Sequence record: MW735835.1
Length of the DNA stretch: 64,000 bases
Reading direction: 5' to 3' (one strand)
This document shows positions 43,286 through 48,270 of this stretch, piece by piece. The number at the start of each line of letters is the position of its first letter. The first letter of the stretch is position 1. The notes beneath the pieces are model-generated. The model did not search any database. It saw only the letters and a list, made by a program, of their open reading frames with translations, and had not been told where the DNA came from. The position numbers were made by a program, and so were the translations under genes.

Positions 43286-43329
43286 GGAGGAGGGGTTCGC
43301 CCCTCCTCTATTCCATCTCACAGTGACGA

Positions 43330-43364: not shown

Positions 43365-43871
43365 ATGTCTGATAAACGCAGTGGTATCGAGAAACTGACC
43401 AACCCGGAAGCACTTTTGCAGGGCTATTGGCAATCAGTGGTCCACCAGTACCGGGAAACCGATTACATTATCGTGGACGAGGACATCCGCGATATCGTCG
43501 CCAAGATCAACGAAGTTTCCGGGGTCTTGGTGACCGACTGCTGCGCCTCCCATCCGGAGCGTGAGCGTCATAACCTCTACCTGGCCTTCCTCCCAACCAC
43601 CGAAGGCTTTGATTTCCTCGCCGACCTGTATAACCACTTCGTGGGCCAGGTGTTGAACGAGGCAGTCATTGGTAATCTGGTCTCGCAGATCCAATTCCGT
43701 GTTCGTCATCGACAAGTCGATGTGAAATTCCAGGAGTGGGGCACCATTTGGAGCATCCGTCTCCCGGTGGACGATCAGAACGTGAAAGATCGTGCACTCA
43801 CCTGCCTCAGGAGGGCTGTTGACAATGCCATTGGAGATCTTAGACGAGAACCTGTGGGCGATCCAAGCTGA
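43365..43871 (+). CDS. Hypothetical protein with TDCCASHP motif
   Basis: GGAG RBS; KINEVSGVLVTDCCASHP resembles the LNxxxGxxTxxSCxGH phage domain. Confidence 0.7.
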   Translation: MSDKRSGIEKLTNPEALLQGYWQSVVHQYRETDYIIVDEDIRDIVAKINEVSGVLVTDCCASHPERERHNLYLAFLPTTEGFDFLADLYNHFVGQVLNEAVIGNLVSQIQFRVRHRQVDVKFQEWGTIWSIRLPVDDQNVKDRALTCLRRAVDNAIGDLRREPVGDPS

Positions 43872-44286
43872 CACCCGCGTCATCACTGTCAACATGGTGG
43901 GTGCCATGGGTGCAGGAGTCGCCAGAACGGCCAGGAATACCATCCCTGGGCTGTACAAGCACTACCGCAAGATGATCACCCAGATCGAACCCACCCAGTT
44001 CATCACTTACCAACATGACGGCATCCGTTATTTGCTGATTCCCACGAAGCTGGATTGGCGAGACCCTTCGCCACGTGGGTTGGTGGTGCACAATTTCTGT
44101 AAACTGGTGGTCTTAGCCAACCGCCACCGCTTAGGCACCATCGTACTGCCGCCCATGGGGTGTGGGAACGGCCAGTTGGACTGGGAGAATGACATCCAGT
44201 ACCTCTACAAGTCGTTGTTGCCGTATCAAGAGACCAAGTTCATCGCCGCGTTAGGCGACATGAGGAGCAGGAATGGAAGGTCCTAA
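43825..44286 (+). CDS. Macrodomain ADP-ribosylhydrolase, DarG/OARD1-like
   Basis: VNMVGAMGAGVA, LIPTKLDWRDPS, LPPMGCGNGQLDW; AGGAGG RBS. Confidence 0.85.
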   Translation: MPLEILDENLWAIQADTRVITVNMVGAMGAGVARTARNTIPGLYKHYRKMITQIEPTQFITYQHDGIRYLLIPTKLDWRDPSPRGLVVHNFCKLVVLANRHRLGTIVLPPMGCGNGQLDWENDIQYLYKSLLPYQETKFIAALGDMRSRNGRS

Positions 44287-45166
44287 TTACTTCCGCGATG
44301 CGTTCGGGTATTTCAAGCGAAAGACAGTGATCCCTGGGACCGATGGACTCGCCAATGCGATGCAGTCGGCCATCAAGGCTCACAAGTTCGTGTTGCCGGA
44401 AGGTGGGCGGGTGCTGGATAACGACTTGCGGGCTCTGCCTGACATCGTTCGTTTGCCGTACCCTACGTTGGTGCTCGAATATGCCTGCGAAGAAGACGTC
44501 CTCAGACCAATTGCTCAAGAGGCTGTTGACAAGGGCAGTGATGACGCCGAGATCCAGTTCATGCTCAAGGGCGGTTTCCGTCGAGACAAGCTGATCGTCA
44601 TCGCCATGCAGAAAGATGACAAGGACATCGACGTCTTTATCATCTTCCATTCCCCATTGCAGAACAACTGGGCTAGCCCGCCGTTCGAATGCACCATTCC
44701 GTCGAAAAAAGAAGAAGTGATGAACTTCCTTGATTCGGCTATCATCCCTGTTCGGGTTGAAAGTGACCATGGGATGTCGCAGGAATGGTTCCAGAAGATC
44801 GTCTGGGCCACCATGCAAGGACCTGTGCGTGCTATTTACGAGGTCGTTGAGGCGCTCTCGTTCAGTAACATCACGGAGATGGACATCCCTGCGAAGAAGA
44901 TGACCTTCACCGAAAGCCGGAAGAAGGCCTTGCCCTACGACAGCTACAAAGTGCTCGTGGTGGACAAGACTCAGAAGATCGTTGGTGCAGGGCGAAGCGA
45001 ACAACGAGCACCGGTGCAGCCTGGCGAGCGTCGTCAGAGCCGTGAGCACACCCGTCGAGGTCATGACCGTACCTATAAACGGTCCGGCAAGAAGATCTGG
45101 ATCAATCCCATGGTGATCAACGCCGGAGTGGGCGGAACGATCATCAAAGACTACTCAGTGAAATAG
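44273..45166 (+). CDS. Hypothetical phage protein with C-terminal basic HxRRGHxR motif
   Basis: GAGGAG RBS; REHTRRGHDRTYKRSGKKIWINP. Confidence 0.8.
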   Translation: MEGPNYFRDAFGYFKRKTVIPGTDGLANAMQSAIKAHKFVLPEGGRVLDNDLRALPDIVRLPYPTLVLEYACEEDVLRPIAQEAVDKGSDDAEIQFMLKGGFRRDKLIVIAMQKDDKDIDVFIIFHSPLQNNWASPPFECTIPSKKEEVMNFLDSAIIPVRVESDHGMSQEWFQKIVWATMQGPVRAIYEVVEALSFSNITEMDIPAKKMTFTESRKKALPYDSYKVLVVDKTQKIVGAGRSEQRAPVQPGERRQSREHTRRGHDRTYKRSGKKIWINPMVINAGVGGTIIKDYSVK

Positions 45167-45177
45167 GAGCGTCACCT

Positions 45178-45651
45178 GTGAAAGAGAAGAAACAAGTCCG
45201 TCTGGTCAACATCAGCAAAGCCCGCGTACAGAAGATCGATCCGAAGCTGCCATTGGTGTCCATCACCGACCGTTACAGCAACGGCGTCTCCATTCCGTAC
45301 AAGGATCAGCGCCCCTTGTTGCAACTGGAGTTCTTCCCGCGCGACCATGCGCCGGAGATCGCAGTCGAGCACTGCATGACCATCGAGCGCGCAGATCAGC
45401 TGATCAAGTTCGTCGAAGAGCAGCGTGAGGCCGGTGCTGAGGTGATCTACATCCACTGCACCGAAGGTCGTGTGCGCTCCTATTCGGTCTGTGCTGCACT
45501 GGAAAGCCTGCCGGGCTTCTACCATGACCACTCCGATGCCTGCATCAAAACGGGTATCCTGGACCGCTACACCTACAACCTCCTGGGTGATCGTTGCGAC
45601 GCTTACGACGAAGCCCGCTCGGCTGGCGCCGAAGAGGAAGCAGCCTCGTAA
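45178..45651 (+). CDS. Protein-tyrosine/dual-specificity phosphatase-like enzyme
   Basis: P-loop IHCTEGRVRS (HCxxGxxRS); TAGGAG RBS + GTG. Confidence 0.8.
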   Translation: MKEKKQVRLVNISKARVQKIDPKLPLVSITDRYSNGVSIPYKDQRPLLQLEFFPRDHAPEIAVEHCMTIERADQLIKFVEEQREAGAEVIYIHCTEGRVRSYSVCAALESLPGFYHDHSDACIKTGILDRYTYNLLGDRCDAYDEARSAGAEEEAAS

Positions 45652-45661
45652 AAAAGTACCA

Positions 45662-45895
45662 CGAGGGGATAGTGTATGCGAAATACGTTGGCACGCCGTG
45701 ATGCCAGCGCCCCTTTCGGATCGCCAGTCACGCGTGATCACATCCTCGGCCTCTCACGGCGGCGCGAGGACTGGTCACCGGCTGGCGATCCCCATACAGG
45801 GGACCTGTAGAGGGCTCTCTAACCCGTTCTCGCCGCCCGTACCCGTCCGTGGCACAATGGCGTGACTACGAGGTCCCCGCCTATCCTCAACCTCG
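45662..45895. ncRNA. Candidate large structured ncRNA of unknown class
   Basis: Intergenic; closing stem 45662-72/45881-95, 10-bp stem 45718-27/45782-91, 8-bp stem 45799-806/45871-78, crossing pairing 45728-33/45860-65. Confidence 0.6.
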
Positions 45896-45909
45896 GTAAG
45901 GATCTACCG

Positions 45910-46701
45910 ATGAAACAAGTCTACCTCGGCGTCAAAATCATCGTGGGCCAGCCCATGACTCGTGGTGCTTACAACGAGTACCGCGGATGGCAAACCCCGG
46001 AGCGTGAAAACGCTGAAGACGAAGGCTATCTGGTGGAATACCCGGACAGCGCGCCGAACCACCCGGACCATGCCGGGTACATCAGCTGGTCACCCAAGTC
46101 GGTCTTCGATAACAGCCACATCGCCCTTGGCGACGTGTCGAACTTCCCGCCCTTCGCCGTCCGTCTGATCGGCGAGCGCAACCAGCTGGCCAGCAACCTG
46201 GGCAAGCTGAAGACCTTCCTGGAAGGTGACGTTACCCACCTCAGTGAGCGTAACCTCGATCTGCTGAACCGTCAGGTACAGGCACAAGAAGTCCTGCTGG
46301 ACATCCTGAACCAGCGCCTGGATTCGGTTGACCTGGGCGTGAGCGTGTCCACTTCGGTTCGCGTCGAGCTGGACCTGGCCAACAACAACGCCAAAGACCT
46401 GATGGGTCTGGCAATTGCTGCTGGTGCTGAAGGTCAAGGCCCCACCGACGTCATCGTGGCACTCGAAGATGCCAAGATCGTCGATGCCGAGGGCAACGAG
46501 ATCGCCGACTCCAGCGTCGAGATCGAGAACCTGGTGCGTGGTTTCTCCGTGAGCGGCAACATCGGCGAGAACCTCTACGGTGTTGCAGTCTGCCGTGAGC
46601 GTTGCGTAGCCAACGTGCACAGCTCCTTCGTTGAAGAAGGCACCAAGCTGTCCCTGCTGGTCAAGATCGGCAGCCACAACCGCGCGCCAGCTTTCGCGTA
46701 A
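45910..46701 (+). CDS. Three-domain phage protein (YxGxK/EGYLVxY/SWSP domain + crAss001_48-like helix pair + unknown C-terminal domain)
   Basis: TAAGGA RBS; YLGVKII..PMTRGAYNEYRGW..DEGYLVEY..YISWSPK; ERNQL..KLKTFL..LLNRQ..LDILNQR. Confidence 0.75.
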   Translation: MKQVYLGVKIIVGQPMTRGAYNEYRGWQTPERENAEDEGYLVEYPDSAPNHPDHAGYISWSPKSVFDNSHIALGDVSNFPPFAVRLIGERNQLASNLGKLKTFLEGDVTHLSERNLDLLNRQVQAQEVLLDILNQRLDSVDLGVSVSTSVRVELDLANNNAKDLMGLAIAAGAEGQGPTDVIVALEDAKIVDAEGNEIADSSVEIENLVRGFSVSGNIGENLYGVAVCRERCVANVHSSFVEEGTKLSLLVKIGSHNRAPAFA

Positions 46702-46938: not shown

Positions 46939-47340
46939 TGTCGGAGGCTCCCTAGACGTGGATGCGTTGCACGGCTTGCGTCCATTCATGTCAGGGGTGG
47001 TTCCCGGGGTACGGGGAGCCTCCACATTCTCAAGCCTGTACTCTGCCTATGGTATGTCGACCGAAGATTTCTTCCCTCGATGTGCTATGGCCCGAGACGA
47101 ACTGCGATTCAGGGGCGGTCCTGGCTTGAGAAAGGCTCCAGCTTCAACTGGAGTCGAGTCCCAACGAATTACGACAGCTCAAGGCGCTGCTGCGCTTGGA
47201 TTGGGAGATCCCGGTCGGCTGTCACCTGTTCGGAAAAGGCCCGGGTTAGCGGGCATCGGGCCAGCGGCAGCCTTTTGGCAGCGCGCGATAATGGCCGGCA
47301 GCCTACGTGGTAGCCATCCGCCGGCGCCCGGGCCTTTTCC
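46938..47340. ncRNA. Tandem structured RNA modules upstream of tRNAs
   Basis: Closing stems 46943-52/47014-23 (10 bp), 47027-36/47123-32 (10 bp), 47232-45/47327-40 (14 bp perfect) plus internal hairpins; no credible CDS. Confidence 0.6.
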
Positions 47341-47350
47341 ACCTAGTTGT

Positions 47351-47426
47351 TCCGCGATAGCTCAGTTGGTAGAGCAGCAGACTGTTAATCTGTTGGTCCC
47401 TGGTTCGAGTCCAGGTCGCGGAGCCA
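47351..47426 (+). tRNA. tRNA-Asn (GTT)
   Basis: TCCGCGA/TCGCGGA acceptor, AGCTCAGTTGGTAGAGC D-arm, CT-GTT-AA loop, GTTCGAGT T-loop, encoded CCA. Confidence 0.97.
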
Positions 47427-47435
47427 GCTTCACCC

Positions 47436-47512
47436 GGCTCCATAGTTCAGTTGGTTAGAATGCTAGCCTGTCACGCTAGAGGTCAGGGGTTCGAGTCCCC
47501 TTGGAGTCGCCA
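47436..47512 (+). tRNA. tRNA-Asp (GTC)
   Basis: GGCTCCA/TGGAGTC acceptor, CTAGC-CT-GTC-AC-GCTAG anticodon arm, GGGGTTCGAGTCCCC T-arm, encoded CCA. Confidence 0.97.
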
Positions 47513-47763: not shown

Positions 47764-47841
47764 GGACGTGGGGCCAGCCGGTACGGCAGTCGCTCTTGAT
47801 GCTTCTAGGAGTGGGTTCAATTCCCACCCGTCCTCAACCCA
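47761..47841 (+). ncRNA. tRNA-like element / degenerate tRNA (anticodon unresolved, TTG or CTT)
   Basis: 8-bp acceptor TGAGGACG/CGTCCTCA, D-arm GCC-AGCCGGTAC-GGC, T-arm GTGGG-TTCAATT-CCCAC; anticodon stem mismatched. Confidence 0.6.
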
Positions 47842-48186
47842 TTCAAAGTTTCTGTTGTGCGGCGGCCGCTGTGCAACGGGATGCCGAGAGATAACTCTAG
47901 AAGGTCCAGAATCCGCCGTGGGAGGCAGACTTCCGACCTCTGGGGGCGATTGCAGTCGTCGTTCTCTTGGTTACAGTGCTAGGGACCATCCCGCCCGATA
48001 CGGTGCAAGGCTGCGACGAATTCCACAAACACGACTCCCTAGAGTGCACGCTAGAGGAGCAGCCGTACCTGAGGTCCATCCAGGTGGCGGTGTTGTAGTG
48101 TCACCCTGATGGACTGCTGTACGTTCTGGACTGGTTCCAGCCGCGGCACGTGACTACGGTAGAATAGCAACCGGTTCCGCCTCTGG

Positions 48187-48227
48187 CTGCCCGCTTGACC
48201 CTCGTTGGCGAGCGGGCAGTTATGCCG
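48187..48227 (+). terminator. Stem-loop closing the RNA cluster, followed by TTATGCCG
   Basis: CTGCCCGCT/AGCGGGCAG 9-bp stem. Confidence 0.65.
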
Positions 48228-48270
48228 TTTCAACTACTTGGAACTGACTATAACAAGGACATCGGCCAAC

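Follow-up and report, generated by a model that had tools for sequence, protein, structure and literature searches.

A conserved, highly structured non-coding RNA ahead of a Sequestin-domain gene in a phiKZ-like jumbo phage

Several described kinds of structured RNA invite comparison with the element analysed here: structured mRNA leaders (three-way-junction aptamers and the operators of the T4 gene 32 and regA type), the RNase III signals of T7-like phages together with processing stems of the ribosomal RNA (rRNA) type, tRNA-like structures and model substrates of RNase P (minihelices, the 4.5S RNA precursor and mascRNA-type RNAs), and GOLLD and ROOL, large phage-associated non-coding RNAs (ncRNAs) found near tRNA genes. 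The element occupies positions 45662-45895 of a 64,000-nucleotide (nt) stretch (hereafter, the window) from the genome of the Pseudomonas jumbo phage pPa_SNUABM_DT01 (MW735835.1, 265.5 kb), where it lies between a cysteine-phosphatase-like gene and a Sequestin-domain gene, both on the + strand. Positions 45640-45910 of the window correspond to 169640-169910 of the record. The element is a real, conserved, highly structured, non-coding RNA; it is a new RNA family that falls outside any curated one, yet it is of a familiar general kind.

Similar to the structured leaders, the element stands 5' of a ribosome-binding site (RBS), is closed by a basal helix (P1) beneath a multi-helix junction, and combines covarying stems with invariant junction and loop nucleotides, P1 touching the hairpin that carries the RBS. 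It differs from them in having no match to a curated family, no predicted alternative fold that masks the Shine-Dalgarno (SD) sequence, a very narrow distribution, and a peripheral domain that ranges from 11 to ~570 nt. The resemblance to T7-like signals and rRNA-type processing stems resides in the location between two cistrons and in the long irregular helix (P1 on P2) that flanks a structured insert; a helix of this type could make the upstream mRNA more stable and leave the downstream RBS free. The T7 signals, however, span ~60 nt, whereas the element is far larger and more elaborate, with invariant hairpin loops for which a simple double-stranded RNA signal would have no need. With the tRNA-like structures it shares a 12-bp helix that starts with G and is followed by RCC, as well as an arm with GUC in its loop, but it has no cloverleaf, no T-loop and no model match, and the 3' RCC continues into P1. 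Like GOLLD and ROOL, it is phage-encoded and elaborate, has tRNA genes near it and, in one relative (L045), exists as an 836-nt structured version; unlike them, it has no Rfam match, is much smaller in this phage, sits between protein genes and abuts an RBS.

The source phage encodes a PhuZ tubulin and is phiKZ-like, with both virion and non-virion multisubunit RNA polymerases of the phiKZ type (PMC8541153). The setting is that of a nucleus-forming phiKZ-like jumbo phage whose control of gene expression is little understood. A novel structured phage RNA on the + strand, possibly a ribozyme or riboswitch-like element, had been proposed at this locus from the letters of the sequence, with a long-range pseudoknot as the headline feature (hereafter, the original prediction). 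The first part stands, as Rfam is negative, homologues covary and the folding is better than that of dinucleotide shuffles; the pseudoknot does not.

Architecture and covariation of the intergenic RNA

The element fills the whole of the 258-nt non-coding gap (45652-45909) between the two genes and ends at the next RBS, as had been described. The + strand of 45652-45910 folds with a predicted energy of -114.9 kcal/mol, versus -93.8 +/- 5.2 kcal/mol for dinucleotide shuffles (z = -4.06, with none of 200 shuffles as good), and the - strand of the same region gives z = -3.48. All complementary segments listed in the original prediction are found where it placed them, and the minimum-free-energy fold recovers the closing helix, the TGGCA hairpin and the left and right arms. 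It does not recover a proposed hairpin with a GCGAA loop (45674-86); this has no counterpart in any homologue, and the stretch carries an invariant junction motif, UAUGnRAA.

The family comprises 11 distinct sequences, namely the window and ten homologues from metagenomic relatives, all belonging to one jumbo-phage lineage. When RNAalifold was applied to a plain MAFFT alignment of seven cores, P2 and P3 were found, with compensatory changes in 8 of the 20 pairs. MAFFT misaligned P4 and the distal part of P1, and hand-made, N-padded alignments were used instead. In the hand alignment of the core, 96.9% of 255 cells are standard pairs, versus 82.7% in shuffles and 36-47% with slid partners; the percentage is inflated by the fitting of this alignment to the structure, and in direction it agrees with the unfitted alignment and with the controls, both slid and shuffled. 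Compensatory pairs occur in every helix of the core, 16 of its 27 pairs having changed on both sides, and none of 500 shuffles reaches the observed values.

The core (45799-45878) is of invariant length and consists of a 12-bp stem, P2, and two hairpins, P3 and P4, with the invariant loops UCUA and CCCnGUC, respectively; this and all other parts of the element described here lie on the + strand. The 5' strand of P2 (45799-45810; GGGGACCT followed by GTAG) pairs with 45866-69 and 45871-78, giving 8 + 4 bp with one bulge. The 3' strand of P2 with its linker (45866-45880) reads CTAC, a bulged G and AGGTCCCC, and ends in the linker GC (45879-80), of which the form R-C is invariant, as is RCCUA, in all 11 sequences. 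Helix P2 had been recognised as the right arm (GGGGACCT/AGGTCCCC plus GTAG/CTAC), and comparison bears it out: its 12 pairs are 100% paired in 10 distinct sequences, with compensatory changes in 7 of the 12. P3 (45812-45825) is formed by GGGC/ACCC, shows compensatory changes in three of its four pairs, and has a loop ending in TCTA, the UCUA being invariant in 11 sequences. P4 (45829-45864) is made of a lower stem, CTCGCC/GGCGTG, and an upper stem, GCCCG/CG(T)GGC, with compensatory changes in 3/6 and 3/5 pairs, respectively; it is capped by the loop TACCCGTC, which holds the invariant CCCnGUC, and has an A-rich internal loop, ACAAT, on its 3' side.

The invariant UCUA of the P3 loop is also complementary to the invariant UAGA within GUAGAG at the P2/P3 junction (45807-45825, and in the homologues). 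An alternative hairpin, UAGAG...CUCUA in the window, would exclude P2b and P3 and is a possible bistable element; because both of its sides are invariant, covariation lends it no support.

The closing helix is followed by the junction J1 (45673-45682), in which an invariant TATG (45675-78) is followed by nRAA, UAUGnRAA being invariant in 10 sequences. The motif is present in L045 too (CACUAUGAAG) and is not enriched in the window. Below it, the 5' strand of P1 (45662-45672; CGAGG followed by GGATAG, with an invariant UAG at its end) pairs with 45881-45895, which reads CTATCC, a TCAA bulge and CCTCG; the last two of these positions, 45894-95, already belong to the RBS hairpin, as its first 2 nt. 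Indels prevent P1 from being placed in alignment columns, so its strands were compared as duplexes. The cognate duplex of the window has an energy of -15.3 kcal/mol, and cognate duplexes of -15 to -19 kcal/mol are seen in 8 of 10 sequences, at z = -2.1 to -4.9 relative to shuffled 3' strands. The closing helix of the original prediction is thus kept as complementary strands in 8/10 homologues despite differences in sequence, identity between clades amounting to 47-95% for the 5' strands and 67-84% for the 3' strands.

Between P1 with its junction and the core is inserted a variable domain (45683-45798). In the window it begins with the hairpin H1 (45686-45709), composed of an 8-bp stem (45686-93/45702-09) and an invariant 8-nt loop (CGCCGTGA, 45694-701), and continues with a long arm (45718-45791) of four stacked helices with conserved CA bulges and an apical 9-nt loop (TCTCACGGC, 45752-60). 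H1 had been noted as a TGGCA/TGCCA hairpin and is actually 8 bp long; across the window, L040 and L042, 7 of its 8 stem pairs have changed in a compensatory way, and the three sequences have the same loop. The long arm, the left arm of the original prediction, has 29 pairs that are 98.8% paired, 14 of them with compensatory changes, and two U.G wobbles are kept in all three long forms. Taken together, H1 and the long arm are compensatory in 21/37 pairs.

The variable domain occurs in four forms. It is a run of 11-13 unstructured nt in L044 and L353, a single hairpin measuring 24-37 nt in five sequences, and ~570 nt long in L045; the window, L040 and L042 combine the hairpin with the long arm, at 111-115 nt. 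With lengths such as 11, 24, 115 and ~570 nt set on a constant core, it offers a clean natural case of the modular growth of an RNA fold.

The same comparison places the RNA on the + strand, as the original prediction had assumed, because on the other strand the G.U pairs of the long arm and of P1, P2 and P4 would turn into A.C mismatches; the orientation of the genes agrees.

The proposed long-range pseudoknot would pair a bulge of the left arm, TCACGC (45728-33), with GCGTGA of the right arm (45860-65). The two segments are indeed complementary in the window, over what is actually 8 nt. All six pairs, however, form in the window only; L040 retains three and L042 four of the six, no compensatory change is seen, and the 72% of cells that are paired in these columns reflects the complete match of the window. 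The left arm is wholly lacking in seven homologues, and the 3' half of the pseudoknot (45859-64) is the 3' strand of the lower stem of P4, where it covaries with 45829-34. For these reasons, the pairing is judged to be a chance complement. By our own arithmetic, ~0.4 complements of 8 nt are expected by chance in ~235 nt, and a repeat finder returned 29 inverted pairs of at least 6 nt in 351 nt.

A better candidate for a tertiary contact is a kissing interaction between GCCGTGA in the H1 loop (45695-45701) and TCACGGC in the apical loop of the long arm (45754-45760), which are complementary to each other as part of an 8-nt match. The seven loop-loop pairs never vary in the three long forms despite their diverged stems, and the candidate is put forward on this conservation, not on covariation.

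Approximately 30 unpaired nucleotides of the element are invariant, in contrast to a flanking protein that is only 58-72% identical, which argues for a specific tertiary fold or a specific partner. To our knowledge, structured RNAs so rich in covariation and invariant loop nucleotides nearly always turn out to have a specific molecular partner.

Distribution, known families and coding potential

Among the phages of GenBank (50,697 records), DNA similarity matched the source phage alone and revealed no close relative, and tblastn with the two upstream proteins likewise matched the source phage alone. A single-protein search with the phosphatase-like protein and a search with an exact left-arm 24-mer in IMG/VR also returned nothing; an alignment-based search succeeded. 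The upstream protein has nine relatives of 61-98% identity among 5.8 billion proteins, all on syntenic contigs, and an alignment-based scan of IMG/VR added five further contigs of ~276 kb each. A covariance model made from the single sequence detected the element in every locus but L048 and L049; a model of the core agrees, and finds nothing more. The phosphatase-like gene is the left neighbour of the element in 11/11 loci.

The gap between the two genes measures 258-262 nt in the window, L040 and L042, 159-187 nt in L041, L044, L047, L349, L353, L051 and L052, and 836 nt in L045, compared to 29-30 nt in the element-less L048 and L049. The long gap of L045 (L045:919-1754) has z = -7.0 and no conserved open reading frame (ORF). 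It contains the core at 1515-1609, a UAUGAAG motif ~25 nt downstream of the stop codon and, 3' of the core, a 13-bp hairpin, and may represent the RNA in a far larger form.

The type of variable domain tracks the clades of the phosphatase-like protein tree. In this tree (midpoint-rooted), L048 and L049 fall within the clade whose variable domains are of the hairpin type (support 97/96), and their phosphatase-like proteins share the C-terminal sequence of that clade. Because of this nesting among carriers and the shared C-terminal sequence, their sub-lineage has probably lost the element, loss being likelier than primary absence.

With a stricter core pattern, scans of IMG/VR recovered only the known lineage, and 185,579 prokaryotic genomes gave no real match, so that no member was found outside the lineage. 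A permissive core pattern used in a metagenome scan gave, among the matches listed, chance matches only, and the pattern CCGCCTA...GGTAAGGA was too loose and became saturated with matches. Weak covariance-model matches in coding regions of L082, L096, L110 and L104 (16.8-18.3 bits) were rejected as chance. The significance of the element is limited by this narrow distribution, of ~11 sequences in one lineage, one branch of which dispenses with it.

The novelty claimed in the original prediction is upheld by searches against known families. At gathering thresholds, Rfam 15 (4227 families) returned only two tRNAs (47351-47509) for the whole window; at E <= 10, the interval 45500-46050 gave two chance-level matches of 16.8 and 12.5 bits, versus thresholds of 99 and 76. 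Rfam at E <= 1 on seven homologous loci matched nothing on the element, and the ribozyme models of Rfam (hammerhead, twister, twister-sister, pistol, hatchet, hepatitis delta virus (HDV)-like and glmS) gave no match at E <= 10.

A coding explanation was rejected, as no reading frame stays open across the homologues. An ORF of 131 aa that crosses the element (45470-45865) is specific to the window, is not open in the homologues and is ascribed to chance, and the AUG of UAUG starts ORFs of 1 to 44 codons that are not conserved. The stop codon of the upstream gene lies inside UAAAAAAG (45649-45656), which contains a slippery heptamer of the A-AAA-AAG type that is not in the zero frame. In pPa_SNUABM_DT01 only, the +1 frame, that of the 131-aa ORF, lacks stops over most of the element; this was judged to be chance because it is not conserved.

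Position ahead of the ribosome-binding site and candidate roles

The element is bounded on either side by short conserved sequences. On the 5' side, the stop codon of the phosphatase-like gene runs into an A-rich leader (TAAAAAAGTACCA, 45649-45661; the A-run itself is listed at TAAAAAAGTAC), and TAAAAAAGTmC or TAAAAAAtwAC directly after the stop codon is conserved in 10/10 element-bearing homologues. This leader is unique in the window and is not present in the element-less L048 and L049. On the 3' side stands the RBS hairpin, CGGTA-AGGATC-TACCG (45894-45909), which has the SD sequence in its loop and is followed directly by the ATG at 45910. It is identical or differs by 1 nt in 10/10 homologues and is also unique in the window, and a comparable sequence with the SD in its loop, GTAAAGGAAGTACC, is found in the element-less relatives. 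TATGnRAA, the A-run and the RBS hairpin were considered as repeated promoter-like motifs, and none is repeated in the window.

The 5' flank GTAAAAAAGTACC (45648-45660) and the RBS region GTAAGGATCTACC (45896-45908) match at 9/13 positions, and the element-less relatives have the single sequence GTAAAGGAAGTACC. The likeness could be coincidental, or else a degenerate duplication that an insertion left behind.

The explanation that we tentatively favour, with a confidence that falls a little short of even, is that the element acts in cis, as a leader or intercistronic element, and sets how strongly the Sequestin-domain (anti-Thoeris sponge-like) gene is expressed, by way of a partner that recognises the core. 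The RNA would be part of a polycistronic mRNA, transcribed with the surrounding + strand genes, and a protein or small ligand would recognise the conserved core loops, with the output of the downstream sponge gene set through translation efficiency, mRNA processing or stability. P1, which links sequence shortly after the upstream stop codon to sequence shortly before the RBS of the downstream gene, would insulate the fold and put the SD hairpin at its foot. Control or processing of the mRNA in this manner would be a first case in which a counter-defence gene of a phage is controlled through RNA.

Alongside the results on folding and covariation, position speaks for such a role in cis. In 10/11 loci, 0-10 nt separate the 3' end of the element from the conserved RBS hairpin, which belongs to the same gene each time, and in 6/10 homologues the 3' strand of P1 and that hairpin have 1-3 nt in common. 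Neither a terminator-like nor a sigma-70-like site stands between the element and either gene, in a scan that covers no phage-polymerase signals, and the element is single-copy in the 265-kb phage genome. Its confinement to one lineage is more in keeping with a leader, a processing RNA or a protein-binding RNA peculiar to that lineage than with a metabolite riboswitch of wide occurrence.

Several results weigh against this explanation. In partition-function calculations, the probability that the SD sequence is unpaired ranges from 0.24 to 0.81, with no consistent shift between the full RNA, an RNA starting from the G of UAUG and the bare RBS region; the predicted accessibility is thus not changed in a consistent direction by the 5' part of the element. 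These calculations do not support a simple SD-masking switch, and a simple RBS-masking riboswitch is not indicated by the modelling because of this lack of a consistent change. P1 is not convincing in L041 and L042. The core of L045 is found ~146 nt ahead of a different gene, is followed by the strong 13-bp hairpin, and appears more like a self-contained RNA. The element is dispensable, since L048 and L049, nested among carriers, do without it. Furthermore, it was found neither beside 38 other homologues of the downstream gene nor in the Xanthomonas jumbo phage Xoo-sp14, and it is not a general regulator of the downstream gene family, as it is absent from beside those 38.

Some of the same results would suit a stand-alone, stable ncRNA gene within the operon, which would be excised and act in trans, for example by binding a protein or serving as a decoy in the conflict between phage and host. 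P1 stacked coaxially with P2 (~25-30 bp) would then be a processing stem like those that bracket rRNAs or T7 RNase III sites, and the RNA would represent a new class of phage ncRNA. The fold is self-contained under a long-range closing helix and has invariant loops, the core of L045 is embedded in an 836-nt gap (z = -7.0) with a strong terminal hairpin and no attachment to an RBS, SD accessibility is unaffected, and a tRNA cluster lies 1.4 kb downstream, as at other phage ncRNA loci. We nevertheless consider this account rather unlikely: the element has no promoter or terminator signature of its own, though the scan leaves out signals of phage RNA polymerases, it strictly abuts the same RBS hairpin at 10/11 loci, and P1, the presumptive processing stem, is missing in 2/10 sequences.

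The core could conceivably also mimic the top half of a tRNA and serve as a punctuation or stability element, recognised by RNase P or another tRNA-handling enzyme. The mRNA would thereby be cleaved, and the 5' end of the resulting sponge mRNA would be structured and protected. RNase P cleaves minihelix and 4.5S-type substrates, and in 11/11 sequences the 12-bp P2 (8 + 4 bp) has G at +1, A at -1 and RCC immediately 3', which constitutes a resemblance to such substrates. The L4 loop carries an invariant GUC, the anticodon of the tRNA-Asp of the phage, which encodes tRNA-Asp(GUC), tRNA-Asn and a CCA-adding enzyme. However, the covariance models for tRNA and transfer-messenger RNA (tmRNA) gave no match to the element at E <= 10, ARAGORN found the two true tRNAs and no tRNA or tmRNA in the element, and no T-loop motif is present. 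The loop that bears GUC has 8-10 nt instead of 7, and RCC is not a free 3' end, as it runs into P1 and in some sequences is part of it. On balance, a tRNA-like role is improbable.

The invariant TATG of J1 raises a further alternative at the level of DNA. The late promoter of phiKZ is T(-3)ATG(+1), of which all four bases are required and for which downstream sequence is important (PMC7598289); TATG at 45675-78 coincides with this 4-nt consensus and is a candidate only. It could act as a late promoter for the non-virion RNA polymerase, with the remainder as leader, or the element could be the functionless remnant of a selfish insertion. The promoter is made conceivable by the consensus match, the phiKZ-type RNA polymerases of the phage and the invariance of TATGnRAA, and the remnant by the polymorphism for presence and absence and by the 9/13 likeness between the 5' flank and the RBS region. 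A transcript starting from G45678 would be without the 5' strand of P1, yet P1 is kept by compensatory change that includes G.U, and the TATG motif is not enriched in the window. As for a remnant, selection on ~60 base pairs and ~30 loop nucleotides is incompatible with a lack of function. We regard a role of either sort as very improbable, and a cis-acting element ahead of the Sequestin-domain gene remains the reading we favour.

Neighbouring genes and other features

The gene upstream of the element (45178-45651, + strand) encodes a cysteine-phosphatase-like protein of 157 aa, a designation based on an HCxxGxxRS motif, a weak DSPc match and the annotation of the record. The downstream gene (45910-46701, + strand) encodes 263 aa, in which residues 80-138 form a Sequestin / crAss001_48 domain (PF21825; Pfam E = 3e-12). 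Sequestin proteins bind 3'cADPR, block type I Thoeris and are often fused to other sponge domains (bioRxiv 10.1101/2025.07.12.664507). The N-terminal 70 residues of the downstream protein correspond to a phage domain that is found widely (phrog_872), relatives of which are annotated as DUF2829 in some records. One of 17 homologues matches the Tad2-like family PF11195 (5e-6), while the copy in the window has no Pfam or PDB sequence match, PF11195 included. A Macro-domain gene is located further upstream (43792-44286, + strand; Pfam E = 1e-4), so that the + strand run of 43792-46701 encodes a Macro-domain protein, a 297-aa protein of unknown type, the cysteine-phosphatase-like protein and the Sequestin-domain fusion protein. 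With Macro-domain and phosphatase-like genes upstream of the element and a Sequestin-domain gene downstream, this neighbourhood looks like a counter-defence cluster.

A remote alternative is a riboswitch or protein-assisted sensor in which the core would read a host immune signal, such as 3'cADPR or related ADP-ribose (ADPR) derivatives, NAD+ or its depletion, or cyclic oligonucleotides, and tune the sponge. This would be an 'alarm-responsive' counter-defence switch at the level of RNA. The covarying helices and invariant junction and loop nucleotides of the element follow the pattern of riboswitch aptamers, it lies in the 5' leader of a Sequestin-domain gene in a cluster with Macro-domain and phosphatase-like genes, and P1 overlaps the RBS hairpin. 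Against this stand the lack of a predicted switch in SD accessibility and of any likeness to known aptamers. Riboswitches are also marked by association with related genes across diverse genomes, whereas here ~11 sequences from one lineage are found, none beside other Sequestin or Tad2-like genes, and L045 has a different downstream gene. Of the explanations considered, a sensor of this kind is the one to which we give least credence.

The tRNA-Asn/tRNA-Asp pair (47351-47509), 1.4 kb downstream of the element, is flanked by two stretches of ~400-500 nt each (46939-47350 and 47764-48270) that have no annotated gene. At the corresponding place, the relatives L349, L353 and L041 have 4-6 tRNA matches, versus two in the window. 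The flanking stretches could hold decayed tRNAs or further ncRNAs.

The CCA-adding enzyme of the phage, which has only two tRNA genes, adjoins a PolX-type nucleotidyltransferase and an HD-type hydrolase outside the window (MW735835.1 215010-218525, L411). It may be relevant if the core of the RNA is handled as a tRNA-like substrate.

Upstream of the cluster, a perfect 9-bp GC-rich hairpin, GAGGAGGGG-CGAA-CCCCTCCTC (- strand), is located at 43287-43308, between two + strand genes, and is flagged as terminator-like for the - strand only.

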